64,000 bases of DNA, taken from Saccostrea cucullata. Lineage: Eukaryota. Below, piece after piece: positions 2,731-22,423 of the stretch (within the stretch, counting starts at the first letter, position 1; each line of letters opens with the position of its first letter). The notes under the pieces were generated by a model. It saw only the letters and a program-made list of their open reading frames with translations. It did no database searches and was not told where the DNA came from. The position numbers and the translations under genes are program-made. The stretch is from assembly GCF_032062105.1 (NCBI RefSeq), contig NW_026935527.1:124001-188000 (forward strand). Reading direction: 5' to 3'.

Positions 2731-5600
2731 TTAATATTGGCACTTGCAAGGTTTTCCCTGTGGATAAAAAACAATAAATTAGTGAAAAAAATCATTCTAT
2801 GAAATATTAAAAGAATCATTTAAAGATATAAGATGATTTATATCCTTACCAGTTTCATCTCACAGACATAGTAGTTCTTATGAGAACAGCTGTCCACATG
2901 CCAGTGGTATTTGTAATGCTGCCAGAAAACTCCACAATTCCAGTCCCCTTCTTTGTGGTACACGGGCTCACTACCATACCAGTCAAACTTGTGGCATCTC
3001 CTCTTTGTGAATCCCCAGCTCCATCTGTGAGCGTTAGGGTAAAGACAGTCGTTCAGGGACATCCAGGCTCCAGGGGACACTTAATGATATACAAAAACCA
3101 TTATTGGACATATTCCATTCAAAGGGTATAAATATTAACAACCAGACTGTTTAAATTTATTCCCAGATAATTCATCTTCAGACAATATAAATAACAGCAT
3201 TGCTACTTTTCAGTATACTTACATTTGATCTATACCTCAATAACCTTTTTTTAAATATCATGATTGAAAAAAGAATGATCATGACTAAATCATGTTTATT
3301 AATGCTAATAAATGATAAACCTGTACATTTCTGCTTAATATGTCTATAATACGTCTTTTAAACACCACACATATGTTCCTGATATTCAGTAAAAGAAAAT
3401 TAACGAAAAGAACCATTAATTGTTTATAAGATGGTTATAATTTACCTCCATACATGGCCAGGTGATGCCTGACGTATGTATTTTCATGAGCTTCATCCAC
3501 ATTACACAGGAATCCTCCCATAGAAGCACATTTCATCTACAATTGAATATAGTGTGTTTACTGTTCTAATATTGCATAGAAAATAGGAGATCAGTTAAAA
3601 CAAATCGAAAAAATAGGTTATGCTAGGTATATGTGATGACAGAAAATATATCTTTAAAAATTCCAAATATGTATTTTCTCGCCTCTAAACAGATATTTTA
3701 CCTTTTATTATTGCCTTCAGAGCCACATCAAATACCGAAATTGAAAGCTATGCAATCTTACCGTAATTCCTGTTCTATTATTTGGTCATGCGTCTCCATG
3801 TGAGAGAAAAATTCTCGAAAGGGACATTAAGAAACATAAAATCAATCAATTTTTTGGTCACCGGCGTGATGCAGTGATTAGAACGTCTGCTCTAGAGTCG
3901 CATAGTAAGGAGTCAATCCTGATGTCGCGGGTTCAAATCCAGCTGTTGGACGGGAAGACCGGTCCTTCGGATGGGACCATATAAACAAAGGTCCCATGTC
4001 GCAGTAGGTGATGGCACAAAAAAGAGCCTTCCCTACTCAATGGCCCTGAGTGCCAAGTAAAGCACAGCAATTGTAGCTCTCCACCGGCAAATGGTGGCGT
4101 CTCCATATGATTGAAAAATTGTAGAGAGGGACGTTAAATAGCATACAATCAATATGATTGAAAAATTCTAGACAAAGAATACCGCGCGTTAGCGCGTTAA
4201 GGTGTGTTATAGAACCGAAGACATAAAAAAAAAATATATTTACATTCCCCAATTTTCCTTCTTCATAATTGTTTATTTCCTTAATCTCAAATGTGAATTT
4301 AGCGCCCTTCAAATCTGTCGTGGTAAATAGATGTAAGAGCTGTTTGTGACGTCAAATGACGTTAGATGACGTTGCAAAGTTAAATGACTCAAACAAACAT
4401 TGCGAGGAAAAAAGTGACAAATTAATTCTTAACGCACATCACGTTAATTTTTACGTTAATTTTTCAGGGTTAAAGTTTTTTCATTAAATTGAAATAAAAC
4501 ATTTTACATTTTAGTGTTCTTAGAGTATTGAAAATGCATATCGTTCCTACTGTGTATTCTAACGCGCGGTGACAAGGTTTCGCGTGTGTTATAGAAATTT
4601 GAACGTCGTGGATTTCTAATTGATTTCATAAGGAAAATTACACTGAATGTAAATATTATCATTTAAACAAGATTAAAATTGATTTAAACTTTCAAAAACA
4701 TGTACCTCTGCCTGCCACCATGTGAGTTTGTCTCGGCTGAAATAATAACAGCTGCCGTGGTACAGTGACCATCCGTATGGACAAGTGCCTGCAGCAACCT
4801 TGGCGGCCACATACCCGAATTTGCTGTATTTAGGGGCGTAATTGTAGCTTGCCTCAACAACTACAAAAATAGAAGACATATATAATATTTTTCTTTCAAC
4901 CATGACAGAATTTCTCTGATAACACTGGGTGTAAAGTATCAGATACTCCTTCAGGAACTTTTAAAACTATCATGTTATCATTACGACTAAACGACCCAAA
5001 TCAATTTCAGAATATTTTAAAGGTCTAGGACAGGAGCCGATTAAAAAATAAAGTATGGTGTTCATCTTTTTCAATCTTTATGTTACTGATAATTATAAAA
5101 GTATTATACTATTCCTTTTCAATGTTCGTGGCCAATGATTCTGCTACCGATTATATTAAGCTATTCCTTTTCAATGTTCGTGGCCAATGATTCTGCTACC
5201 TATTATTAAAGCTATCCTATAAATGTTGGTCAATTTGATTTATTTGCGCTCTGCAAAAGAGATTTTCGGTTATTTGACCAGATTTAGTGACACTACAGCG
5301 AGTCTGTAGGTGGGTAAGGTGTAGAATTTAAGTTCCTTATGATGACTTAAATTCCAATCCTTACCGTGTGTTAGCCCTACAAAGACCAACATTTACAGTG
5401 ACAACTGCAGCTGGCACTATACAGCATTTAATGACAAAAATTTGCAAAAGAACAAGTGAAGCATAATAATTACCAACCTTTATATAAAAATTTAAAAAAA
5501 CATATATTTGAAACAAGGAAACCAATCCTGTTTTTTTTTATCAGAATGTCTTACCTGATGCTACGGCAACTAATAATGATATAGCAAGGAAACAATTCAT
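2731..5600 (-). CDS. Secreted C-type lectin-domain protein, subtype A copy 1 (A1), perlucin-like, 182 aa
   Basis: Exons 5600-5555, 4860-4706, 3536-3446, 3079-2850, 2757-2731; all GT-AG and in phase (46+155+91+230+27=549 nt). MNCFLAISLLVAVASVVEA-SYNYAPKYSKFGYVAAKVAAGTCPYGWSLYHGSCYYFS...WNCGVFW...DSC...YVCEMKLGKPCKCQY*. Signal peptide plus long-form CTLD Cys pattern; AATAAA at ~2698-2703. Confidence 0.93.
3857..4153 (+). mobile_element. tRNA-derived SINE in A1 intron 2
   Basis: B-box-like GGTTCAAATCC head, body shared with the 25077, 44067 and 62396 copies, GGGACGTTAAA...(CAAT)n tail; a further SINE 3' fragment lies at ~3791-3850. Confidence 0.85.
5109..5200 (+). repeat. Tandem duplication, ~52-bp period, in A1 intron 1
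   Basis: CTATTCCTTTTCAATGTTCGTGGCCAATGATTCTGCTACC occurs twice. Confidence 0.85.
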
Positions 5601-5934
5601 GATTGATGCCTACTGAATATATAAAATGGATTCACCGTCATCCCTTATATAACGTCTCAATGCAATTTTTATGCAAGAAAATATTCACGCCTTTTTCATA
5701 TAAACAAGAAAAATTACTTGCTTTTGCAAACAATACTTTCTGCTGATAAAGATTTGAATCGACGTTTGTATGTAAAAACCTTATACTGATCGAAATGGGA
5801 GGCGTTAGGGCGGGATTTTATCCCTTGTTAAGTTGAAAATATATTGTAGAATACCAAATGTCTTCAAAGGGGACAGTATTATATATACATGTCGAAGTAC
5901 GAAATACCAGTGAGTTACCACAACTAGATCTAAA
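5601..5934. promoter_or_regulatory. Putative bidirectional promoter, pair 1 (A1/B1)
   Basis: 334 bp between divergent ATGs; TATA-like elements at ~5645-5652 (minus strand TATATAA) and ~5877-5887; GGGCGGG at ~5808-5814; forkhead-like GCAAACA at 5726-5732. Confidence 0.7.
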
Positions 5935-7369
5935 ATGAATTCAGTCGTGCTGGTTAGTCTCCTGGTTCTATCCATCCTTGCTGGTGAGTTTTATGTTAGA
6001 ATATATTGAATTATTGCAAGATCTTTTTTGTCGATAATTTCAATCCATTTAAATTTTTATTCTCCTTTGATATATTAATAAGTGTAAAAAATACATTAGG
6101 TTTATCATGAATTGCATGGGAATGTTTTTAAAATATCTTTCATTTATTAAACCAATTAAAAGGAGACGATTTCAATGACATAAAAATACCACTTTTTTAA
6201 GTCTCACAAGCCAGCTATAACGTAAGGCCAAGGTACAGTGCCTTTAAGTATGCTGCTGCCAAAGTTGTTTCTGGTGGTTGCCCTTACGGATGGCATCAGT
6301 ACAATAAACGGTGTTACTGGTTCAGCAGAGACCGGTTGACTTGGTATAGAGCTTCTGTAAGTTTATTTTCAAGTGCACCAAAATGAATCAACATTGATAA
6401 ATATTAGCAAGAGAATGTCCTATTCTTCACCTTTTCATTTTTTTCAAAATGAAGTATACCGACACTTAAAATTCTATAATTAGATGAGATGTGCCGCCAT
6501 GGGAGGATACCTGGTATCCATTGACCAGTCCCACGAGAACACTTACATCAGACACATGTGCAGCATTTACGGATGTAAGATTTCTTTTCTTATTGCTTTC
6601 ATATAAACATTGCAATCTAGCTCTAAGATGTTCTAAAACTTGTTTGAATCTTACTCTTTAAATCGAGAAAAATATGTCTTTGAGATCTTATTTAGACAGA
6701 AGAGGAGCATGGCTGGCTTTAAACGATATTCTGAGACCAAACAAGCATAGATGGTGCTGGGGGTTCATTTCAAAACCATGTCATAAATTTGACTGGTACG
6801 GTGAGGAACCAGTTTACCACACCACTGGTGATTATAATTGTGGCGCTTTCTGGAGATCATACAAATTCCACTGGCATGTTGATAGCTGTCAACAGAAAAA
6901 CTACTACGTCTGCGAAAAAAATTTGGTAAGTTATATTTGACGGAGTTTAAAGAAAGTCGAAAAGAAGCAAAATTACATTAAGCTTAATCTTTATATGTAT
7001 TATTCAAATAAAACTAACTCACAGAAATCGAGACAACTCGCTTTCATTTTAGAACTTCTCACTCGTAGGGAATAACAGCTTTTTATAAAATATCAGTGAT
7101 TAAACAAATGGGTTATTCACTGATAATTAAAACAACATTTTCATATACTTAATATTCAATATAAATTAAACCATAGCTATTCAATTAAAAATACCTTTGT
7201 AAAATCTTTATATCGTATGAATAAAGATAAATTTTAAGGCTAGAATTTATTTTGTTTTTTAATGATAAGATGGCGTTTGTATAAAACGTATAACACATGT
7301 TATTTACTGTGACCTAATGCAAGATTCCATCTTATTTTTCAGGGAAAACCATGTGTCTGTGCTTACTGA
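5935..7369 (+). CDS. Secreted C-type lectin-domain protein, subtype B copy 1 (B1), 183 aa
   Basis: Exons 5935-5983, 6202-6356, 6484-6574, 6696-6925, 7343-7369 (552 nt). MNSVVLVSLLVLSILAVSQA-SYNVRPRYSAFKYAAAKVVSGGCPYGWHQYNKRCYWFS...RWCWGFISKPCHKFDWYGEEPVYH...HWHVDSC...YVCEKNLGKPCVCAY*; AATAAA at 7376-7381. Confidence 0.93.
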
Positions 7370-8149
7370 ATATTTAATAAATATTTTTAAAAGCATGATG
7401 TAACATTTATTTTTGTATTTTTCTGGCTAGATGGCTTTTTATAAAGCTTTCTTATATATAATAAAGATAGATAAAGTTGGTTTAAATACGAATTTGAGAC
7501 TTAACACAATGATAACTATAATCGTGCTAAATAAAATTTTGTTTTATATCAGTATTTACAAACTTGTATTTACTTATAACCAAAGTGTTATTTAATAAAT
7601 GAAGCTATACAGAAAAATCTTTCAAACATAAAACAGATTGACAGACTATGATGTCTTTATTTTGACATATTAACGGGAGTAATGATTGTTAATTGATAAG
7701 ACGTCGTTTACATATAAGAATGTCAAAAAAAGTCCACAGTGTCTTCCTTTGCTTTAACATCGAAAATTATGCTTCGCTTGAATATAAACAGGTTAGTTAT
7801 AAAGTAGAACAGTAAGTGTGTACGAAACTCCAGCAGATTGCTGGGAGACATGCATGGGTTCCAGACTACATAAATATTATCAGTTAGAAACTTCAACATC
7901 TTTATATCATTTTTAGAGTACTTTTGATCACAATCAGAATGATTTTTACAATACATTAATTTTTTGTTGACCAAAATTTGCCTTTTCTATTTTTATGGAG
8001 GGCACCATTTGTTTACGGTGTCCCAAAGCAGTCTCTTTATGTTTAAATTTTGATTTTAAATAAATTCTATTTTAATTTGTGTGTGAATGCATTGATTGCT
8101 GAAATTAGAAAAATAGAGAGAGGTGTTCAATCAATTTTAAAAACAAAGC

Positions 8150-8191
<42 letters not shown>

Positions 8192-9825
8192 TTTTACTTT
8201 GAATATTCCTACAATGTATGTGTATCACAAGGCGGCTTTGCTTAAAGATAAGTTTAGCTCGGTTATAACGAAGTCACTGAGACCTATGAAAATTACTTCG
8301 CTTTAACCGTAATTACAACGGATAAAGCATTTAATTTATATAGATGGGGATCCAAGATAACTTAAGTTTGCTCTGTCCGTGAATTCGAAATATCCGTGTT
8401 CGTACTAAGCGAGTTTTACTGTACCCTTTTCAAGAGGAATACTCCACTAATGATAACCCAAAAGGTCCCTTCATTGACTTATATAAACTTTAATTTCAAA
8501 GTGTTGGTTAAAATTTTTCCTGGCGACTAGATTTGCAATGGCGACTAAAATATTTTGTGAAAAGTACCCACCTTCCCTGACAAAAAAGTGCTAGTTTTAA
8601 TTATAGTTAACTATTAAATATTTTTACTTTAGTAAATCAAAGTATTTTTACTATGAATGTAGTTAGATACATATTACATGTATTTAAAATCTTAGAAGTA
8701 ATTTCCTGATATTAACAAGAACAATTTTTGTATATTAACAATAGGTATGTACTTTAAGAAATATTTTTTAAGGCTCTAAATCTTTTTTTCTTCAGTAGAC
8801 TATAGATAACTATCGTAAACTTTTGTAATGATGGAACCAAAACTTTAGAGTTCACTTTGAGTCTGACAACTATCTTACATCCTCTGACAGAAAACCAAGG
8901 TCTTCTCCTTTATGTTAAGCCGATCAAGCATTTACACATACACAGATTTATTATAAAAACGACGTTCTGTCACCATTTGAAATATCTGAACTTTGAATTT
9001 ATGACCTTTCCAAACAATAGCTTTCATGCCGTCATTTTCAGTTTTGCATACGTAACCAGTGCTGGTATATAAAGCTGGACTACAGTCAGAAGAAGATACA
9101 AGGGTTAGAGAATGTCTCTAGAAAATACAAAAAAATTGACTTAAACCTTATATGGTGGAATACAAGACAGCTTATCAAAAGATTAAGAATACTCCTAGTG
9201 GTGCTTATGTTTACAGCATTTATAGTCTTAATTGTTATCGAGAATTTAGTCTTAAACATTGACGAGGTTGAATTAGAATTATCTCCTGTAACATGTGGAG
9301 GTTTAAAAAGTGTTGGCAACGTCCATAGTAAAGAAAAACCCACTATAATGTTTTTTGATGTTAAAGAATCAAAGCATGGACGTATTATAACTACTTCAAA
9401 TAATCCAAATTACAGTATTAGGGTCCAATCACGCACCCATTGGAACACCGTGGGCCTAAAATATTTTATACATTATTTGATGTGGCCATATGAATTGATA
9501 CGATATTGAAATACAGTACATAGTTTTTTAATCCCGTAATACTTACTATACTACCCGTTTTCTACGGAAGGGAATTGTATTCAATTTCATTACAACGATA
9601 GAAGTCGTACAATTCAGTCCTTTGCATGCTTTGGCGTTAATAGATTACCCTGTGAAATTGTCATTAAAAGAACTTCTGGTTATGGGTTTGTTTTTTATTT
9701 ACTTTTTTGACTACAATTGCATACGGAATACACATTGTGTCAAAATATCAATTGTCAGAAAAATACCTATTCAAAATTATCAAACTCTTACCTCGTAAAA
9801 GTACCTCTTTAATAACCATTATCAT

Positions 9826-10490
9826 GAAGGATATGGAGATATCGAACAGTATTCAATATCCATAAAACAATACAAAATAGGAGCAGAGCAAACACGGACC
9901 TCCAAAAACATCAGAGGTGGGATCAGGTGCCAAGGAGGAGTGAACATCCCCTGCAGACTGATCACACCCGCCGTGTGCTCTTTGTCAGGACCGGGAAATA
10001 ACGGAAAAATCCGTCGTAAATTCAGTGTTTAAATAATGGACTAACAATTAGTATGAAAAACGTCAGTCAGCATTTGACTCAGTGATAAATTGTATTTGCT
10101 GACAATGTCATTGTATTGACCATAGAACTTACGAAATGATGGCTTTTAACGAGATTGCTGATATTCTTGTTTCATCAACTTGTTTGTCAATAATTGACCT
10201 TATTTTACAAATTGTTTATACGTAGAGCATGCTCTTGCGTATCGAATCAACTGAGAAATATAAACTCCGTATGCAGGTGATGAAGGTTTATTGCTGCATA
10301 AGAAGGGAAGTTGACGATAGAAAAGTTAAAGTCATCACGTTTGTGATAGAGCTTGGTTGTTAGATTACCAATAATGTCTTTTTCAAGTAAAATATCCAAG
10401 TATGAAACAGTTGTATCATACTCTGTGGTATCTTTTATCTCAAGCTCACCAGGATATATCGTATCGACATGGGAATGGAAATTGTCATCC
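9826..10490 (-). mobile_element. Decayed reverse-transcriptase fragment of a retroelement, probably Penelope-like
   Basis: Minus-strand translation IYPGELEIKDTTE..SYLDILL..LTTKLYHKRDDFNFSIVNFP, then frameshifted SQLIRYARACS; same family as 24290-25060. Superfamily assignment is from memory of the motif. Confidence 0.75.
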
Positions 10491-10649
10491 ACGTGGACAT
10501 CCATCTGAGCTGAGATTACATTTGAATTATCAAAGTGTTGCGTCTATCATGCAAGATTAAGAATAACAACAATCGGGCAACAAAAGAATTGGTAAATCTT
10601 TACTGAATAAACACATGTGAATTATAAGTTTCCCTTTATTCTAATCAAT

Positions 10650-12401
10650 CTAATAAGTACAATGACATGGCTTGCCCTGCAAAACAGAAAGAATAATGAG
10701 AACATTAAAGTAATAACTAACTCATACAAATAATGTATTTTTGCATATTAGTCAGTAAGAGATAAAATTAATTCAAAACATGGGCAAACTGATAATGCAT
10801 ATATGAAGTTAAAAATAAATAGACTAATAATGATAAGTTAATAAATAAATAAGAATAAATGACAAAATACCCTTCATTTATCATGCAACAAATGCTCTAC
10901 CTATAAAATGATGTAATACTAAATTAAAATGGCTTACCATGGGTTTCTCACAAACGAAATGGTTAACTTGTCCACAGCTATCAACATGCCAGTGGTATTT
11001 GTAAGACTTCCAGAAAATACCACAATTGTAGTCCCCAGTTTCGTGATAAACTGGTTCCTGACCGTACCAGTCAAATTTGTGGCATGGCTTGACGGTGAAT
11101 CCCCAGCACCATCTATGTTTGTTTGGCCTCAGAACATCATTCAAAGCCAGCCATGCACCTCTTCTGACTGCACAAAAAAGATACATTTTACACACCAGAA
11201 TATAAATTTCAAAACAAAATTCTTCAGGTAAAACTTTCCGTTGAATGCGTATGACTTACATCCATAGACGCTCAACATGTGTCTGACGTAGGTGTTTTCG
11301 TGAGACTGGTCAACGGAGACGAGGTATCCTCCCATGGCGACACATCTCATCTATAGATAACAGATGTTCTTACTTTTACTCATCTTTACTTTCTTACGTG
11401 TACATGTACAAGTGTTTTAGACTTAGTCTTTAGTTTAGTTTTAACGTCTCTTCTGTTTAGTTTTTTTAAATTTATTATACTCAGATTTAAAACAATAATG
11501 TTTAGATATGAGAAATTAGAGTCGAAATTTCAAGGAAATACTTACAGAAGCCTTGTACCAGTTGAGCTTGGTTCTGCTGAACCAGTAACAATGTTTGTTG
11601 TACTGATGCCATCCATGTGGACATCCACCTGAGCTGAGAGCAGCAGCATACTTGAAGGCGTTGTACCTAGGTCTGTTTCCATAGCTAGCCTCAGAAACTG
11701 TGGAAGTATTGAATTTGGTAATAATTGACCATTCACCTTTTTTACATAATATAATAATCTCGAACTGATTAAGATTTTAACAAAAGCATTTATTATTATT
11801 TTACAAGAGAGAATAATATACAACTGTTTACATGGTAAGCTATTTTGTGATTATCAGAGAGGTAAAAATATTCCTTATAACTCATTAGAAAATAATTTGA
11901 CTCTGAGTTTTAAGGTTGATTTTTTAAATAGTAAGGTAAACTGCTCATATATTTTCAAAATACTTTAAAATTTTATGCAGGAACTTAAATAAGTATATTT
12001 GTTGCCTAAAGACTAACCATTGCTTACAAGTACATATTGAACTTATAAAATAAAAAGATGATTAAAAAGTGAACTAAGTGTAAATTTAAATTATTTGTAG
12101 CTACCTAATTACAACTAAATTTCAATTCATATTTGTATCAAGTTCTCTACATTAACTAAAGAACTAATATGGGTTGATTATAGCAAACATAAAAATGCTT
12201 GTTCAGTTTTTTTTTTTTTAAGGTTTGATATTTTTTTTTATTGTTAAGGTATCAAGCTTATTACATATGATAGGTGAAAAACAAATTCAGAATTACAGTA
12301 TGAATATACAGAATCAAGAAAAAATATTCTGTGTCCAGAAAATACTACTCACCAGCAACAATGGCAGCTATGACCAAACAGGCTAAAATGACTTGATTCA
12401 T
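10650..12401 (-). CDS. Secreted C-type lectin-domain protein, subtype B copy 2 (B2), 182 aa
   Basis: Exons 12401-12353, 11697-11546, 11350-11260, 11167-10938, 10676-10650. MNQVILACLVIAAIVAVSEA-SYGNRPRYNAFKYAAALSSGGCPHGWHQYNKHCYWFS...FVCEKPMGKPCHCTY*; AATAAA at 10635-10640 (minus strand). Confidence 0.93.
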
Positions 12402-12712
12402 CTTTATGGAATCAGAGAATGTTGCTAAGAAAGAAGCACAGATCATTTATATACTGTAAGGGACACTGGTGACAAACGGTTACAGACCCGCCAAAATTAT
12501 GCTAGTTAAATCGAGCGTAATTTATGCTTGCTAGAGTAACACATTTGCTTTCCAAACTCAGCAAATATTTTCATGTTTGGTAATACTCCAATTAGTAATC
12601 GCTTGAGCACCTGATTTTTTTGTACATGCTTGCCAAATGAACCGTAACACAACAAGTACATATATTTGTGGAGTGGAGGGGGATAGGCACAGCTCAGTCT
12701 GAATCTGAAGCA
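12402..12712. promoter_or_regulatory. Putative bidirectional promoter, pair 2 (B2/A2)
   Basis: 311 bp between divergent ATGs; minus-strand TATATAAA at 12446-12453, TATA-like at ~12659-12667; CAGCAAATA at 12559-12567; alignable in blocks with 20296-20604. Confidence 0.7.
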
Positions 12713-14227
12713 ATGAATTCATTTATTGCGGTCGTTCTTTTAGTATGCGTCCTTGCAGGTAAAACTGGATTTACCTTTAAATAATTTGTTTGATTTTCTA
12801 AATCTGATCAAATGCAACAGGTTTTATATTTAGAAGGTTTTTTTTGTTTAATCTTAAATTAGATTTTTATCTTTAATAAAAATGTTTTCTCTTTTTTGTA
12901 GTTGTTGAGGCAAGCTACAATTACGCCCCTAAATACAGCAAATTCGGGTATGTAGCCGCCAAGGTTGCTTCAGGCACTTGTCCATACGGATGGTCACTGT
13001 ACCACGGCAGCTGTTATTATTTCAGCCGAGACAAACTCACATGGTGGCAGGCAGAGGTACATGAATTTGAACATTTTAATTAGATTTAACCTAGTTAAAC
13101 CATGAGCGATAAGTAAATGTTACATTTTCGAACTTTTAGTGTACAATTAATGGGATTTCATGTGGTTTTGATGACATAAGAAAATGTAAATTGAGTGTTT
13201 TGGGACAAGAAATACAAAATGGTTCTTGCAAATGTTTTTAGTTAAGATTTATTAATTTTTCTGACTCCAAGTGTACCTCGATTCTTCTGTGCGCAATTTA
13301 CCTTATTTTCAATTAAGTATAACTTACCCTACTATTTTATGAAGCAACATTATGATACACTCCATTTCATTTTTGGCAAATTGTAGATGAGATGTGCGTC
13401 CATGGGAGGATTCTTATGTAATGTGGATGAAGCTCATGAAAATACATACGTCAGACATCATCTGGCCATGTATGGAGGTAAATAAAACCATCTTTAAAAA
13501 CCTTGGTTTTTTTTGTTAGTTTTGTATTAATAAATGCGAGGGACTTAAGTTAGGTATTTATAAGTCATACAGTGTATTGCATTTAACTGTCTTTCAAGCT
13601 TAAACAAAGAAACGTTATCTGTTTTGGTATGTACGCGTTTGTTTTTATCTAACTGTGTATTCAGATAAATAAATAAATTTTGGCCTTGATAATTCTTTTT
13701 TAAATTATTTTTTGTGAATAGAACTAATGTAACTATAAAGACATGGAGCAATGCTGCTATCTCGTCTGTAACTTAATTGTATGAGATTAAATTTAGACAG
13801 TATGGTAGTTACCGGTATTATTTATACCCTTTGAATGGAATATGACCAATAATGTTTTTTTTAATATTTCATTAAGTGTCCCCTGGAGCCTGGATGTCCC
13901 TGAACGACTGTCTCTACCCTAACGCTCACAGATGGAGATGGGGATTCACGAAAAGGCGATGCCACAAGTTTGACTGGTACGGTAGTGAGCCCGTGTACCA
14001 CAAAGAAGGGGACTGGAATTGTGGAGTTTTCTGGCAGCATTACAAATACCACTGGCATGTGGACAGCTGTTCTCATAAGAACTACTATGTCTGTGAGATG
14101 AAACTGGTATGAATATGATTCGACTGTTGTTTTTAAATGATTCGATTTTTTAAAATTTAATATACTGATTTTATCACTAATTTAATGTTTTTATCCACAG
14201 GGAAAACCTTGCAAGTGCCAATATTAA
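12713..14227 (+). CDS. Secreted C-type lectin-domain protein, subtype A copy 2 (A2), 182 aa
   Basis: Exons 12713-12758, 12902-13056, 13387-13477, 13877-14106, 14201-14227. MNSFIAVVLLVCVLAVVEA-SYNYAPKYSKFGY...GKPCKCQY*. Confidence 0.93.
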
Positions 14228-17200
14228 ATATAGAGTCTTGTATGCAATATTAAAAATAAAATTGGGACAACGTATTTTCTATTTGTAATAATTTCCATTG
14301 TAAAAGGAAAATATGACCACCGTTAATAAATGCAACATACAGAAACGATGACAATACCACCACCACTTGAATGAAGAATTACACGCGATATGGAATACAC
14401 TTTCATCCGAAGAAAAATTCTTTCAATAATAAAAGTACATCTTCATTAAAATACCTGATAGAAAAAATGCACTCAATAGTACAATTTTTATCTTTATCTA
14501 CAATATTAAAGAAGTGCAAAGATAAGAAAAAGATCTACCTAAAATATCGGTAAGAGTCCCTATAAGGTGACAGTTTTTCTCCAGTAATGCCCACGTCACC
14601 ATCCTCTGTGCTTATATAGTGGTACAACCGGGATCTGACAAAATAATGTCACTTCTGTAGACGAAACCTTAATTTGCCGCTATGCTTCTGCTTTTGATTT
14701 TTTACCATATAAAGATAGATACATATATAAAACTTTTCAACAACCTGAAATGCATAATGTATTTATGCCTGTGTACTTTGTTTTACGAAATGATACTTTC
14801 AAGCACAAACTTCCTCTTATTCCTTCCAAAAGTGGATTCTAGAAAAAAAGAAAACATTTCTCATTTTAATATGATTTATAAAAAATTAAATCTGTTGGAT
14901 TTCCTTAAGATTGAGGACTGTATTTACCATAAACGGCACTAATGTTTTTGTTGAAGACTGTAGCATCATCACAGTTCGCGGGGACCAATGTTCGTACATT
15001 CCATTTGTCATTCTTACAATTCTTTTCTCAAGAAATAACGAGGGCATTGTAATCGTATTTCTTTAGTGAAAGTTACATCTATATAAATGCAAGTTGCCCT
15101 TGAAACTTTGTCCTTCTGTACGCGTAACATTTTGGTTACCTAAGAACATTGTCCCCATAAATAAAAAAAATTATTTCATGGTATTCCAAATAAAATATAC
15201 TCCATACGTCAATTTAAGTTGGATCAGATGAGAAGAAATAATATGAATAAAATTGTTGTCTTCCTCCTTGATATTTAGTAAAAGTGTAATTTAAAACTCG
15301 TTTCTAATAAAAAGCATTCAAATAAAAACATTATGAAGAAACTGTAAGAAAACAATAACAGAGACAGAAAAATATTGCATTTTTATCCAAATAAACTTAT
15401 CCAATTTTTTAAGGGTCAAATTAACTTTTTATTAACTAGTGTCTTGGACACCATTTTATATACAATAAAAATGAAACATTTATCTGCTATTTAATACATC
15501 TTTTAGCCTTTAAACATCAGTGGAAGGAGTAGGAGGGAGTAGGCCCTGGAGGATTAAAAATCCTATATCGAATGGTCATACACGCTATATGCTCCTCGTC
15601 ATGATCGAGCTAAATAAAAGGAAAAATCCGTAAACAATTTAGTATGGAAAAAATAGTCTTACAAATTTCATGAAAAACGTCTATCAATATTCGACTTAAT
15701 GATGGCTGCATTTGCTAGCAAGGTCATTTTATCAACTTTAGTTTTTGCAAAATGGTGAAGTTAAACAAGACAATTCATTATGTCATTAACATATTTGATA
15801 ATAGCCTGTCTTGTTTAAGATATTTAGTAGAGCTTGTCCTTGCCTATCGATTCACCTGGAAGACATGAACTTGATATGCATGTTTAATTATATACTGCTT
15901 AATAAAAACAAAAAACGAAGTTGAGAATAGAACAAAATTATAACATTTAACAAATTTGTTTTATGGATAACTGATATGGCGGTGCTTTGTTTGACACAAA
16001 TGAAAACGCAGTGTTGCAATTTGAATGGTCATTTAATAATAAATAAATGACAAAGCAAACAACATATGTCAACACATAGTATAACTGACAATACCAATAC
16101 AATTAAACACATTGCGTAATAGAAACAAACGCATATAGCAAAAAACATCATAGAATCTTAAGTTCACAATATTATTCAATGAGGTACGCAAAAATGTACA
16201 GTAAACAGAATGCGTATTTCAGACCTAAACAGTGTCAAAGATGGGGCGTTAGGTAGCCTTTAATAAATATTCATTGTTAAATATTCAAGGAGACAATAGA
16301 TGTATCAGAAGCTATGGTTCTTCTTTTTTCGAGTTCAAAATGATATTGTGATTATCATGGGAATGAAAATAAATATTGTTACATGTAACTGATTAAAAGG
16401 TCATAGATTTATTAAAATGCTACATTGAGGGCCTTGCAAGAATTTTTTCAAGTTGACTTTGTTAAAAAAAAATGAATACAAAACAGGGTTTTCTTATATT
16501 TTATAAATAATTAATCTGGAATACGTGTTTTAAATTTTGAAAAGACGTACGTTTTGATGATTTTTTTCTTAGTAAAATTTTAAGGTTACATATTTCCTAA
16601 AAGTTCCTTGCAGATTTAAAGTATCCATTTCTGCTTTATACAACTTCTTGATGTTGACAAAACTTCTGAAGTTTCTCCTTTGGTTAGTGTAATAGTTTGG
16701 TAAGAAGTAAAGTACGAAGATTGGGGATTTAAGACTTTAGAAATGTTCTCTTAGAAAACGTCATGGTCTGGAGTCATCTATTGTACGAAATTTTGAAATG
16801 CAAACTTTGAATGAAATTCTGGAAAACCTATTTTAAAATAGGAATCCTAGAGCAAAATTTAATTTAAGTTATAAGCCAGAGCAAAATTTAGATAATACAA
16901 ATGCAATAAGAATGATCCATTGCCTTTATTCTGTTTTTATTCTATTTTATGTTTCAGAATATCATTTCTTCATTAAAAGAACAAGCAGGAATAAAACTGT
17001 ACGTAAACTTAAATTACACAACAATCATTATGTTGATGCTTATGATTTTGGACCCGTAAAAATAATTTCTGAGTTTGTTCCTCATCTTTAAATAGATAAC
17101 ATGTAGATGTATAAGTGTATTTTCTTTTCACTAAAATACTTTGAGAACTTTAGATAAGGTGATCTAAAACATATTTTGAATTAATGCAAACAAGGGGAAA

Positions 17201-17832
17201 AACTTTGTGATAATTTTCTGACTTCTTAAGTTTTATTAAGGGAAAATTGACTATAATGTAACGTAAAAACAGTTCCTTTATGTGCATGAAATGGTCAAAA
17301 ACAATAATTTCTAGGCTCGTGAAATGGTAAAATTTTATCCTTGACCAAAAACGTTTACTGAATAAATGGCTGACGCCACAGATGGACTGAATACATATAT
17401 TGCATATATTGTGTAGGAAAAATATGATTTTTGTGAACTCAAAAAGGGAAAAGTTTTCAAAGCTGTAACTTTTTCCTTGGGAAAATCTGGACAGACAGAT
17501 CATAACGCTACATAAGCAAGGATTGTAAATTCCTACCATTTTTGTCGCAATCTTTGGTATTACTAGTATTTCTTGCATCAAATGCGGTCCGTACCAAAGG
17601 CATGGTTATCATTAATCAACCAAATTATACTTGTAAAAATTCTGTATTCATCATTCAATTGTCACCCACATCATTAATCTTTGTTAGTATCTTTAATTCT
17701 AAATAAAAAATAATTGTCCAAATAAAATTCTGAAGATCTTTATATATTGCTGAAATTGTACTTTGGAAGGGATACTTTGATAAAGAAGAAAAAACGATGT
17801 CATGGAAATCAACTCTTTATTTAAAATAAACA

Positions 17833-20295
17833 CTAGTAAGTACAACGACATGGTTTTCCCTAAAAATAGAAGAAAAGAATCATTTTTATTTAATTCATAC
17901 TTTTTTTAAAAACCAATGTCGATTATAAACTCTCTTGACAAACATTGATATTCAACATACTAAGAAAAATGTATTTGGATGCAAGTACGACATACGAGGG
18001 TTGTTAGAAAAGTTCGCGGACACATTGAATTACAGAAAATCTATTGTTTACTGTGAAGTATGACCTATGACTGAATGAATTCCTACATTTTGTTTATTGG
18101 TATGTAAAAAATCAGGTCAATATAATAAAATCTTAAAATTTTACAACTATTTTTATTATGTGGTTATGGGATTCACGGAGCAATCACTTGACGTAAGGCG
18201 ACGTGACAACCAGATTTCAACCCTTTAAGCTTTGTCGCAGTTCTATGAATCTTTAATTTCTTTATATTTTTCTCATATTTTTTCTACTTTAAAATTGAAT
18301 ATCTATATCAAGACATGTTACTTTTCAACTATAATGTCTTTTTATCTGTTTTGGATATTATTGAGATCTTAAAAAATAAAAAAATAAAAAGGCTGTGCAT
18401 TCAATCGATCAGGTATGGAAACTATGCAAAACATAGGCGCAACGCAACGTCCATGCATAGAGGGGTATTTTCGATGTAGTTAATCATTTAAAATGTTTCT
18501 CCTTCCATTCTTATGAAGCTACAACCACTTGAAAACTTGTTCTTTGTATGTGTAGGATATTCCCGGCAGCATCTTAAACATTTTAGTCTCTTTTTAGACA
18601 TTTTCCTGTCTGCACACATAATTTTTACGTAGTGCACTGCTCCATGCTCAATGACGTTCCAATTTTTGGCTGTGTTCTTACGCGTTGATCATTTATAAAC
18701 AGCTATAAAACAGCCATATACCCTCCAATTTAGTTCAAACTTTTTCCCAGTGACGTTTCCTGCATACTTTAGCGGAAGGTAAAATATCATAAATCTCTTG
18801 GCACTACAATTGTGCAATTTTTAATTTTAATAAAGAGTCTTTGTGATGTAAACGTGTCATAATGCAGCATGCTCCATGAAGCAAGATTTATCAAAATAAA
18901 AATGCCGTATATTTTTCAATAATCACCGGAGAGCACCAAATTCTTGTATATTTATTGGAAAAAATGTCAAGATTATATCTGGAAAGTTTGACCGGTTTCA
19001 TGGAAATAGCGCGATCACAATAGAACTTGTCCGCGAACTTTTCTAACACCCCTCGTATTATAATCAATGAAATTATTACTGTGTACATATGAATACAGTT
19101 CTTGACTTACCATGGGTTTCTCACAAACGAAATGGTTAACTTGTCCACAACTATCAACATGCCAGTGGTACTTGTAAGATTTCCAGAAGATACCACAATT
19201 GTAGTCTCCAGTTTCGTGATAAACTGGTTCCTGACCGTACCAGTCAAATTTGTGGCATGGCTTGACGGTGAATCCCCAGCACCATCTATGTTTGTTTGGT
19301 CTCAAAACGTCATTCAAAGCCAACCATGCTCCTCTTCTGACTACACATAAATATTTTTTACAATTTATAAATAGATGAATTCAAAACAATTAAAAAACGT
19401 TCTCATTGGGTACTCATAACTTACATCCATAGACGCTCAGCATGTGTCTGACGTAGGTGTTTTCGTGGGACTGGTCAACAGAGACGAGGTATCCTCCCAT
19501 GGCGACACATCTCATCTACAGATTATAAGATAATTGGCGTACTTCTGATCATTGTCCAATTCAACAAAAAAATGTTTCCTTCTGAGATATTTCAACTTCT
19601 TTTCATTTGGTGTATCTGAGAAATCTCTCTCTTTCTTATGGAGATGGGATGGGGGTCATATGGTCAATGTGATGATACGCTGCAGCGAGAATTTTAAAAT
19701 TTTGAACTTACAGAAGCCTTGTACCAGTTGAGCTTGGTTCTGCTGAACCAGTAACAATGTTTGTTGTACTGATGCCATCCATGTGGACATCCACCTGAGC
19801 TGAGAGCAGCAGCATACTTGAAGGCGTTATACCTAGGTCTGTTTCCATAGCTAGCCTCAGAAACTGAATTTTACAAATAAGTGTCAAGCTCAGAATTCTT
19901 ACAAGTCCAAATGTTTTATCACGAAGGTTGTCTGGTGAAGGTCAAAAACAATTTTCGAAGTTGTTTTTTCTCAACTAGATTATATTTTAAGAATTCCAAT
20001 GTTCTTTTCTCCAAGAATATATTATAATAAAATCCATAAGTTGTAAAAGTTGTAAAAAGAAATGACCGGAGATATTTAAGATTTTTATTCTTTCGACAAT
20101 GTAATTAAACAAAACAGATTTTTGTACGATATTTAATTAAAAAAATTGCACTATATTTGAACATTTCACGGAAAAGTATTATACCGATCATGCTGATATT
20201 CCGTATTTTTAAAGTATAAGATACACTTATTGGCAATGTTACTCACCCGCTACAATGGCAGTTAGGATCAAACTGGCTAGAAGAAAGGAATTCAT
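17833..20295 (-). CDS. Secreted C-type lectin-domain protein, subtype B copy 3 (B3), 182 aa
   Basis: Exons 20295-20247, 19863-19712, 19515-19425, 19340-19111, 17859-17833. MNSFLLASLILTAIVAVSEA-SYGNRPRY...GKPCRCTY*. The last intron is expanded by a mariner-type MITE. Confidence 0.92.
17995..19055. mobile_element. Non-autonomous Tc1/mariner-type element (MITE) in B3 intron 4
   Basis: 28-bp TIR CGAGG(T/G)TGTTAGAAAAGTTCGCGGACA-type with 1 mismatch, TA on both sides (17993-94, 19056-57), no transposase ORF. Confidence 0.9.
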
Positions 20296-20604
20296 TTCGT
20301 GGAATCAGTGAATGATTCTTTGGGAGAAAGATGACGAGCTTATATAGTGTTTGGGTTAAAATAATTTTTGCACAGGCCTGCCAGAATCATGTGTGTTCAA
20401 TCGTCTGTAAACCTTAAGTAGAAGACAACTACGTTGTGATCGTGCAAATTCAGCAAATATGTGTGTTTTACCTAACATCTCAATTATTTATCATTACAAT
20501 AAAATATTAATCGTTTCACATGTTTTGCTAAATGTACCATGAACCGACAGGTATATATGCTGGCGGTAAACTGTAGATGTACAGTTACTTTTGAGACTGA
20601 AGCC
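20296..20604. promoter_or_regulatory. Putative bidirectional promoter, pair 3 (B3/A3)
   Basis: 309 bp between divergent ATGs; TATA-like elements at ~20339-20347 and ~20552-20558; CAGCAAATA at 20451-20459. Confidence 0.7.
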
Positions 20605-22423
20605 ATGAACATCTTTATTGCTACCGTTCTTCTGATAAGCCTTTGTGCAGGTAAAACAGAAATAATTTTAACAGTTTAACATATTCTTATTTCATTCGCT
20701 TTTTCATTCCAATTTTTTTTTACAATATTCGCCTCATTTAAGATGCATCAGTGATGAATTAGTTCAATTTTAATTTGTGCTAAGAGATGTGTAAAATTAT
20801 ATACATTCAATTTTATTTAGTCATCGACGCCAGTTACAATTATGCCCCTAAATACAGCAAATTCGGATATGTAGCCGCCAAGGTTGCTGCAGGCACTTGT
20901 CCATACGGATGGTCACTGTACCACGGCAGCTGTTATTATTTCAGCCGAGACAAACTCTCATGGTGGCAGGCAGAGGTATATAAAGCTTTATTTAAGTCTT
21001 TTATTTTTTTGTTTACAAACAGCCCACCATGGAAAAAGTCTTATCCAACTCCTTTTGAAAAGCAAATTAAAGCGTGTCAGTCGGTTATCAATGTTCATAT
21101 AAATGTTCATCTCAATGAAATAAAAAGCATTGTTATTTTTATAGATGAGATGTGCGTCCATGGGAGGATTCCTGTGTAATGTGGATGAAGCTCATGAAAA
21201 TACATACGTCAGGCATCACCTGGCTATGTATGGAGGTAGGGATCTTCATAACTGATCTGAGCTGAGAAATTATTATATAAATATTGCATGTAGTTGAGTA
21301 TAACATTGAAAATTTTCACCCCAAGAAAACCATTGTCAACCGAGGCGCAGCCGAGGTTTTCGAGGGGTGAAAATTTTCAATGTTACACTCAACTACATGC
21401 AATATTTATTATATTATACTGAATTTTTATACAAATAAATATAACAGCGAATCGTACACGCATAAATTCTGCGCAGTCGCTATTTTTTTTTTTGGAATAT
21501 CACCGGTCGTCAAGCACTGTTGACTGTTGCTACGCTGGAGGGCGTGGCTTCATTATTCAGCTGGTAATAGTGTTTCTTAACAAATGTTTCTCGACCAATC
21601 AGATTCAACTAATTTACATGAAAGTATAATATATGTATATATCTAACATATTTATTATGTAAATGGATGAAATACATGTACTAGTTCAAATTAAACACCA
21701 GAGCTGGGATCAAGTTTTTTTTAACTTGAACTCAAGGAGGACAATTTTTTGTATAACTGGAATAAAAAACATTTACCAGTAGGCCTATCTTCCATTGTGC
21801 ATTCATGTATTCTTTTTTTTAAATTATGTTATATTTGATTACTTTACATCTGCATGTATTTTGTTCGAATAAATTCAGATTACTTTTTAAAATTTTTGGA
21901 AAGAGCATTGATTACTCTCAATGAAAAGATTTCAAGTTACTAAGTATTTTGTCAAAGAAATAACCATGCATGTTCGAAAAATTCGTGAAAATTGCCTTTA
22001 CAATGTGTATAAATTAAATAAGATATGAAAATTTTCAAGATATTTGTTATGTAATTTCATTCTAAGTGTCCCCCGGAGCCTGGATGTCCCTGAACGACTG
22101 TCTCTACCCTAACGCTCACAGATGGAGCTGGGGATTCACAAAGAGGAGATGTCACAAGTTTGACTGGTATGGTAGTGAGCCCGTGTACCATAAAGAAGGG
22201 GACTGGAACTGTGGAGTTTTCTGGCAGCATTACAAATACCACTGGCATGTGGATAGCTGTTCTCATAAGAACTACTATGTCTGTGAGATGAAACTGGTAA
22301 GGACTTAAATCATTTACATAACTGCAATTTTTTTTCTCTAATAAATGAAAATCGTTATACAGTCACTAACAATATTTTTTTCTTTTCGCTAAACAGGGAA
22401 AACCTTGCAAGTGCCAATACTAG
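20605..22423 (+). CDS. Secreted C-type lectin-domain protein, subtype A copy 3 (A3), 182 aa
   Basis: Exons 20605-20650, 20821-20975, 21145-21235, 22067-22296, 22397-22423. MNIFIATVLLISLCAVIDA-SYNYAPKYSKFGY...GKPCKCQY*; AATAAA at 22441-22446. Confidence 0.93.
21272..21630. mobile_element. Hairpin-bearing non-autonomous element, Crypton-like, in A3 intron 3
   Basis: ~50-bp-arm inverted repeat 21277-21409 around CCGAGGCGCAGCCGAGG, then short IR pair ATTATACT/AGTATAAT with a subterminal ACCAATCAGA; absent from A1 and A2 intron 3. Confidence 0.65.

Follow-up and report, generated by a model that had tools for sequence, protein, structure and literature searches.

We analysed a 64,000-nucleotide (nt) stretch of the genome of the oyster Saccostrea cucullata (the window; contig NW_026935527.1, positions 124,001 to 188,000 of the forward strand), in which six genes encoding C-type lectin-like domain (CTLD) proteins of two subtypes, A and B, are arranged as three divergently transcribed A/B pairs. 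The pairing is real and it is conserved in other oysters: the locus is a non-canonical CTLD array of bidirectional paralogue pairs, of which the window holds the distal three-fifths, the full array having five pairs and starting ~18 kb before the window. The explanation that we favour, with somewhat better than even confidence, is that this is an old, oyster-conserved array of divergent CTLD pairs whose A and B members are activated together in the pediveliger larva, where they have an adhesive role.

Head-to-head A/B pairs are conserved across oyster genera

Exactly six related genes are present in the window, all of them within 2.7–22.4 kb, and a tblastn search with their long exon open reading frames (ORFs) recovered no further family members elsewhere in the 64 kb. 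An exhaustive search over GT-AG splice sites and reading frames returned one consistent five-exon model for each of the six genes, with exon sizes of 46/49, 155/152, 91, 230 and 27 nt, GT-AG introns, no internal stops and products of 182–183 amino acids (aa; Table 1). The original prediction had placed six intact five-exon CTLD genes here, and these exact models agree with it. The two subtypes that it had separated by motif are also found as described, with SYNYAPKY, NDCLY and GKPCKCQY in A and SYxxRPRY, RWCWGF and GKPCxCxY in B. Along the window the genes are ordered A1(-)/B1(+), B2(-)/A2(+) and B3(-)/A3(+), such that all three pairs are divergent and pair 1 is reversed relative to pairs 2 and 3, which corresponds to the single inversion that had been proposed. 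The distances between start codons, given beforehand as 309–334 nt, measure 334, 311 and 309 nt for pairs 1, 2 and 3, respectively. Window genes were searched exon by exon and full-length searches were performed with natural database orthologues, the joined translations of the window genes being used only for gene-model checks, for the tree and for the ratio of non-synonymous to synonymous divergence (dN/dS).

Conservation of the head-to-head pairing in other bivalve genomes had been proposed as a check, and 14 intact A/B pairs together with one decayed pair were found in five oyster species from four genera, with no A/A or B/B pair among them. Three A/B pairs were identified in Magallana gigas, two in Crassostrea virginica and at least two in Ostrea edulis. 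The spacing between start codons is 303–382 nt across all 15 pairs, whereas intron length varies between 84 and ~8,800 nt, with insertions present. Divergent genes that lie less than 1 kb apart, and are kept so across species, have the arrangement of a bidirectional promoter. A WD40-repeat gene adjoins the last A gene in both M. gigas and C. virginica, and a multi-exon WD40-repeat gene is also found in the window, at ~30.5–37.4 kb on the + strand; with the same neighbour in all three genomes, the array locus is syntenic. A profile search at E < 1e-10, constrained by a word index and a length filter, returned oyster proteins only. The split between the A and B subtypes predates the divergence of the oyster genera.

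Table 1. Positions of the A and B genes and of the spacers between their start codons, numbered from the first letter of the window.
Feature	Position	Strand	Details
A1, subtype A CTLD, 182 aa	2731..5600	-	exons 5600-5555, 4860-4706, 3536-3446, 3079-2850, 2757-2731; open frame, GT-AG
Spacer P1, 334 nt	5601..5934	none	between A1 and B1 start codons; two opposed TATA boxes
B1, subtype B CTLD, 183 aa	5935..7369	+	exons 5935-5983, 6202-6356, 6484-6574, 6696-6925, 7343-7369
B2, subtype B, 182 aa	10650..12401	-	exons 12401-12353, 11697-11546, 11350-11260, 11167-10938, 10676-10650
Spacer P2, 311 nt	12402..12712	none	two opposed TATA-like boxes
A2, subtype A, 182 aa	12713..14227	+	exons 12713-12758, 12902-13056, 13387-13477, 13877-14106, 14201-14227
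B3, subtype B, 182 aa	17833..20295	-	exons 20295-20247, 19863-19712, 19515-19425, 19340-19111, 17859-17833; intron 4 of 1.25 kb
Spacer P3, 309 nt	20296..20604	none	two opposed TATA boxes
A3, subtype A, 182 aa	20605..22423	+	exons 20605-20650, 20821-20975, 21145-21235, 22067-22296, 22397-22423

Several public gene models at the array locus are wrong, namely the protein models P0038, P0028, P0055, P0057 and P0002. In the mis-modelled proteins of 264 aa, exons 2-3 of an A gene are duplicated, while those of 251 aa and 265 aa are hybrids in which exons 1-3 of a B gene run into exons 2-5 of the A gene in the following pair, and a B protein of 206 aa has its start taken at an upstream ATG.

The array is old and collinear with that of Saccostrea echinata

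The two further pairs of the array are located upstream on the contig of the window, at C17664:106077-108613 and 111727-123108, which places them between ~18 and 0.9 kb before the window start. One of the two is intact, with the layout B(-)/A(+) and a spacer of 381 nt. The other, A(-)/B(+), has decayed: in its A copy there is a stop, exon 4 has an internal deletion and 8.8 kb of DNA has been inserted, while exon 2 of its B copy contains a stop. The spacer between the two copies still measures 342 nt. On a chromosome of Saccostrea echinata the same five pairs are found in identical order and orientation, and all five are intact.

Positional orthologues in the two species share 74–84% identity in their non-coding DNA, with spacer identities of 77% for P1, 82% for P2 and 84% for P3. 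The introns and spacers of paralogous pairs within the window are identical only at chance level, and the same applies when P1 is compared with P2 or P3. Since orthologous non-coding DNA aligns and paralogous non-coding DNA is at chance, the three pairs must long predate the split between S. echinata and the window species. The strong intron divergence on which the original prediction had remarked is therefore confirmed, with both introns and spacers of paralogous pairs failing to align. Its description of a triplicated cassette stands as far as the presence of three pairs is concerned, but a recent triplication was rejected on these alignments, the pairs being old and part of a five-pair array.

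Outside the array, a B-like exon-4 fragment in two frames at C14391:42758-42953 is probably a pseudogene fragment. The tail-to-tail spacers of the window contain a repeat of ~660 nt (9811-10480 and 15543-15883) which also occurs in at least five places in the S. echinata array, and an ORF at 10247-10504(-) resembles a transposon remnant.

Purifying selection and gene conversion within the array

Purifying selection on both subtypes is strong, with dN/dS values of 0.01–0.16 in all comparisons. Synonymous divergence (dS) between positional orthologues is 0.35–0.74 when A1 is excluded, and window paralogues are closer to one another than this (0.14–0.24 among A1, A2 and A3, and 0.21 between B2 and B3). 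A paralogue dS below the orthologue dS indicates that the exons for the mature protein have been homogenised by gene conversion after speciation. Gene A1 differs from its positional orthologue in S. echinata, SeA3, at a dS of 1.27; the signal-peptide exon of A1 is orthologous to that of SeA3, as is spacer P1 to its counterpart, while A1 exons 2-5 are A2/A3-like. Its partner B1, on the other hand, represents an old B lineage, at a dS of 1.27–1.39 to B2/B3 and 0.44 to its orthologue SeB3, such that the same two pairs give a dS of 0.14 for A1-A2 and 1.27 for B1-B2. Because A1 was converted while B1 remained of the old lineage, A copies are interchangeable between pairs and partners are not pair-specific. 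This independent conversion of A argues against co-evolution specific to each pair but is compatible with a general requirement for both an A and a B. The locus thus provides a clean case of exon-restricted concerted evolution within an old, collinear array.

Two longer paralogues, C and D, extend the pattern. In C, Cys-rich repeats and a linker rich in Gly precede an A-like CTLD and the same tail (GKPCRCQY), while D carries a Lys-rich extension ahead of a CTLD whose tail is CSC. The C and D genes of S. echinata are head-to-head, the called genes lying 361 nt apart. The window genome has two tandem C genes on another contig, at C3700:37854-57736, the second of which is head-to-head with D. In an unrooted tree {A,C} is split from {B,D} with support of 89/89, which is the expected outcome if an ancestral head-to-head pair was duplicated. 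The pair had been put forward as the unit of duplication and selection. In favour of this, the pairing is conserved, both subtypes are constrained and C/D are also paired, but A1 was converted without B1 and one C gene is a solo duplicate, so that the claim holds only in part. Amplification of the array for dosage is possible.

A and B are non-canonical CTLD proteins

Exon 1 encodes the signal peptide and the last exon, of just 27 nt, encodes the GKPCxCxY tail. Membership of the CTLD family is evident from Pfam PF00059 (Lectin_C) matches on full-length orthologues and from a phmmer comparison of O. edulis A with the PDB, in which domains of DEC-205, MRC2, DC-SIGN and SIGNR1 were matched with E values of 1e-18 to 1e-10. 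Single window exons compared with PF00059 are sub-threshold but in register, scoring 14–17 bits at profile positions 42–107, and an ESM Atlas look-up matched only generic CTLD clusters. No variation was found among 16 A and 14 B sequences in the six framework cysteines (CPxGW..C, MxC, NCG, DSC and VCE) or in the WIGL-type core motif, AW[ML]xLND. The motif of Ca2+ site 2 is missing from both subtypes, which have invariant EPV instead of EPN/QPD and WHV instead of WND; with these lost, A and B are CTLDs but not canonical Ca2+-dependent lectins.

Further cysteines are invariant within the subtypes, two of them in A (FLC and NDC) and one in B (RWC), while the cysteine of CHKFDW and the two in the tail are common to both. 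The mature A protein contains 11 cysteines, an odd number, and mature B contains 10 or 11. Both mature proteins are basic (isoelectric points of 8.6–9.3) and have ~10% Tyr, 6% Trp and 6% His. Ahead of the CTLD there is only an N-terminal peptide of ~20 residues containing Tyr, Lys and Pro, with no repeat domain. By sequence, A and B are small, basic, tyrosine-rich secreted CTLD proteins that lack the calcium/sugar motif.

The original prediction proposed an obligate A/B heteromer, in which A and B would be two subunits of one secreted complex, with the promoter arrangement serving 1:1 stoichiometry; the subunits would probably be disulfide-linked via the Cys-x-Cys tail and the extra cysteines. 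The invariant subtype-specific cysteines and the odd count of 11 in mature A are in its favour, although the combined count for A and B is still odd and the CxC tail is also found in C, which persists as a solo duplicate. Equal numbers of A and B are kept in each species examined, and the older C/D pair is head-to-head too. In the window genome one pair consists of two dead genes whose S. echinata counterparts are intact, but such joint decay was seen only once. Also against the idea, A exons are exchanged among pairs irrespective of B, with no co-evolution specific to the pair. Heterodimeric CTLDs are known in snaclecs and in CD94/NKG2. That A and B are both basic, and that rearrangement has so small a target in the spacer, is either evidence against the idea or neutral. 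On balance we consider an obligate heteromer possible but doubtful.

Expression and a probable link to larval settlement

Spliced cDNA of both A and B, with both tail micro-exons included, is present in each of two M. gigas libraries. In the Logan contigs of runs SRR20648589 and SRR20648585 the B coding sequence is complete and spliced and A is represented by its spliced exons 2-5, confirming the splicing pattern in an orthologue and the presence of both mRNAs in the same libraries. The A exons lie antisense in those contigs, joined to the 5' end of the B cDNA. Both runs have the same junction, which lacks GT-AG and connects a site 27 nt ahead of the ATG of B with one that precedes exon 2 of A by 5-6 nt; a library chimera between two abundant transcripts probably accounts for these contigs.

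Five neighbouring perlucin-like CTLD genes and one located elsewhere are among the 59 of 27,902 Crassostrea gigas genes reported as pediveliger-specific, and these CTLD genes are 44-48% identical to Atrina foot protein-1 (apfp-1) (PMC6337334). Three of their proteins are abundant in competent larvae and fall sharply afterwards (PMC7574277). The C. gigas genes CGI_10006917, -19, -20, -21 and -22 together with CGI_10010615 are probably the orthologous A/B locus plus C: the name of K1REI9, an A-type M. gigas model, is identical to that of the CGI_10006917 product, and a group of five genes in an array with one elsewhere fits an A/B array with C on another contig. Through this correspondence the array is probably tied to larval settlement, with A and B probably expressed at the same stage. 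A search for the C. gigas gene ids in supplements and for neighbouring ids in the literature found none, and a paper on attachment in Crassostrea hongkongensis makes no mention of lectins.

Back-to-back promoters and a proposed role for the paired genes

Outward-facing TATA-like boxes are found on both sides of the spacer in 10 of 10 lineages, 43–54 nt from the B ATG and 47–59 nt from the A ATG (in P1, ~48–50 nt from the ATG of B1 and 51 nt from that of A1). The only words clearly above shuffled controls in the spacers contain TATA, with TCAGCAA(A) borderline, and spacer identity across genera is marginal (65–66%, compared with a null maximum of 63%). We read the spacer as two back-to-back core promoters ~200–280 nt apart, and an enhancer common to both of them is plausible.

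In the explanation that we favour, this compact back-to-back promoter would keep A and B on together. Activation would occur in the pediveliger larva, as suggested by the probable orthology to the C. gigas genes, and the two proteins would form part of the adhesive or cement used at settlement. Both subtypes appear to be needed because both have been kept under strong purifying selection; a putative disulfide-linked A/B hetero-oligomer, formed via the tail cysteines, is one possible reason for this.

A number of observations weigh against this explanation. No promoter motif common to the lineages was clear relative to shuffled controls beyond the TATA boxes and, because paralogous spacers are alike only in these boxes, the shared enhancer stays putative. 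Charge complementarity between A and B was considered and rejected, both proteins being basic. The probable equivalence of CGI_10006917-22 with A/B is drawn from a protein name and a neighbourhood pattern rather than from sequence. The first C copy on C3700 has no partner and is a solo tandem duplicate. Finally, a spacer of ~300 nt presents a very small target for rearrangement, and the conserved pairing could for this reason be passive.

If linkage were passive, an ancestral inverted duplicate would have been copied as a block and kept since its ~320-nt spacer is rarely broken, and A and B would be independent, perhaps partly redundant lectin-like proteins with roles in, for example, immune recognition or the shell matrix. 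All pairs derive from one ancestral pair, such that 14 pairs do not amount to 14 independent trials; the chance-level identity of paralogous spacers and the existence of the solo C duplicate are also consistent with this. Against it, spacers are held to 303–382 nt in all 15 pairs while the introns, with their insertions, vary from 84 to ~8,800 nt, and both TATA boxes hold their position in every lineage. The two subtypes have moreover stayed distinct at dN/dS values of at most 0.16 since before the genus split, and the probable C. gigas orthologues have one sharp stage-specific profile in common. The loss of the calcium/sugar motif argues against ordinary immune lectins. Passive linkage is for us an unlikely account of the locus.

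Returning to co-activation in the pediveliger with an adhesive role, a more specific proposal can be made, which we offer tentatively and hold to be rather improbable as it stands. The array would supply a two-component, lectin-fold settlement material in which A and B (and C and D) are obligate partners, the CxC-Tyr tail together with tyrosine/3,4-dihydroxyphenylalanine (DOPA) provides cross-links, and stoichiometry is set by promoters kept since before the genus split, with subunits that are interchangeable by exon-limited conversion.

Significance and comparison with known systems

Published work on what makes up the oyster larval adhesive has provided a list of candidate genes only. The present analysis shows that the probable candidates fall into two conserved subtypes, paired back to back; an array of head-to-head pairs of two subtypes is not described in the literature searched. 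This organisation leads to a concrete hypothesis that is cheap to pursue, namely co-expression in the foot gland and cross-linking of A with B, for which the signal-peptide exons and the spacers offer handles for paralogue-specific probes.

Perlucin, from abalone nacre, has the CTLD fold in common with A and B, and its name has been attached to these genes by automatic annotation only. The probable profile of the A/B genes is larval and not mantle, which makes them a poor fit to a nacre protein.

The snaclecs of snake venom resemble A and B in comprising two paralogous CTLD chains of similar size in which sugar binding has been lost, and weak matches to botrocetin, bitiscetin and agglucetin were obtained. 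The snaclec alpha/beta heterodimer, with its loop swap and one interchain disulfide, is known from crystal structures, whereas an A/B dimer is putative. The extra cysteines of A and B are at other positions, and the CxC tail is present in A and B but not in snaclecs.

For histones H2A/H2B and the collagens COL4A1/COL4A2, it is proven that the products form a heteromer and that regulatory elements are shared. As with A and B, these are divergent paralogues with a spacer of a few hundred bases, duplicated as a pair and long conserved. They differ from the oyster pairs in that A and B each have a TATA box of their own, and no other shared element was found between them.

The pediveliger-specific perlucin-like genes of C. 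gigas (PMC6337334, PMC7574277) are, like the genes analysed here, neighbouring genes for secreted CTLD proteins with one more located elsewhere. The papers list them as candidates; the subtypes, the pairing, the tail exon and the concerted evolution are not described.

Of apfp-1 no gene-pair organisation is described, and the comparison that we draw with it is one of descriptions. Mannose binding is attributed to apfp-1, but A and B are without EPN/WND and also have no repeat domain. It is a basic, Tyr/DOPA-rich secreted protein of the bivalve adhesive interface that has a C-terminal CTLD; A and B are likewise basic, tyrosine-rich and secreted and have a CTLD, and the likeness extends to C and D, in which an N-terminal extension and a Gly-rich or Lys-rich region are likewise followed by the CTLD.

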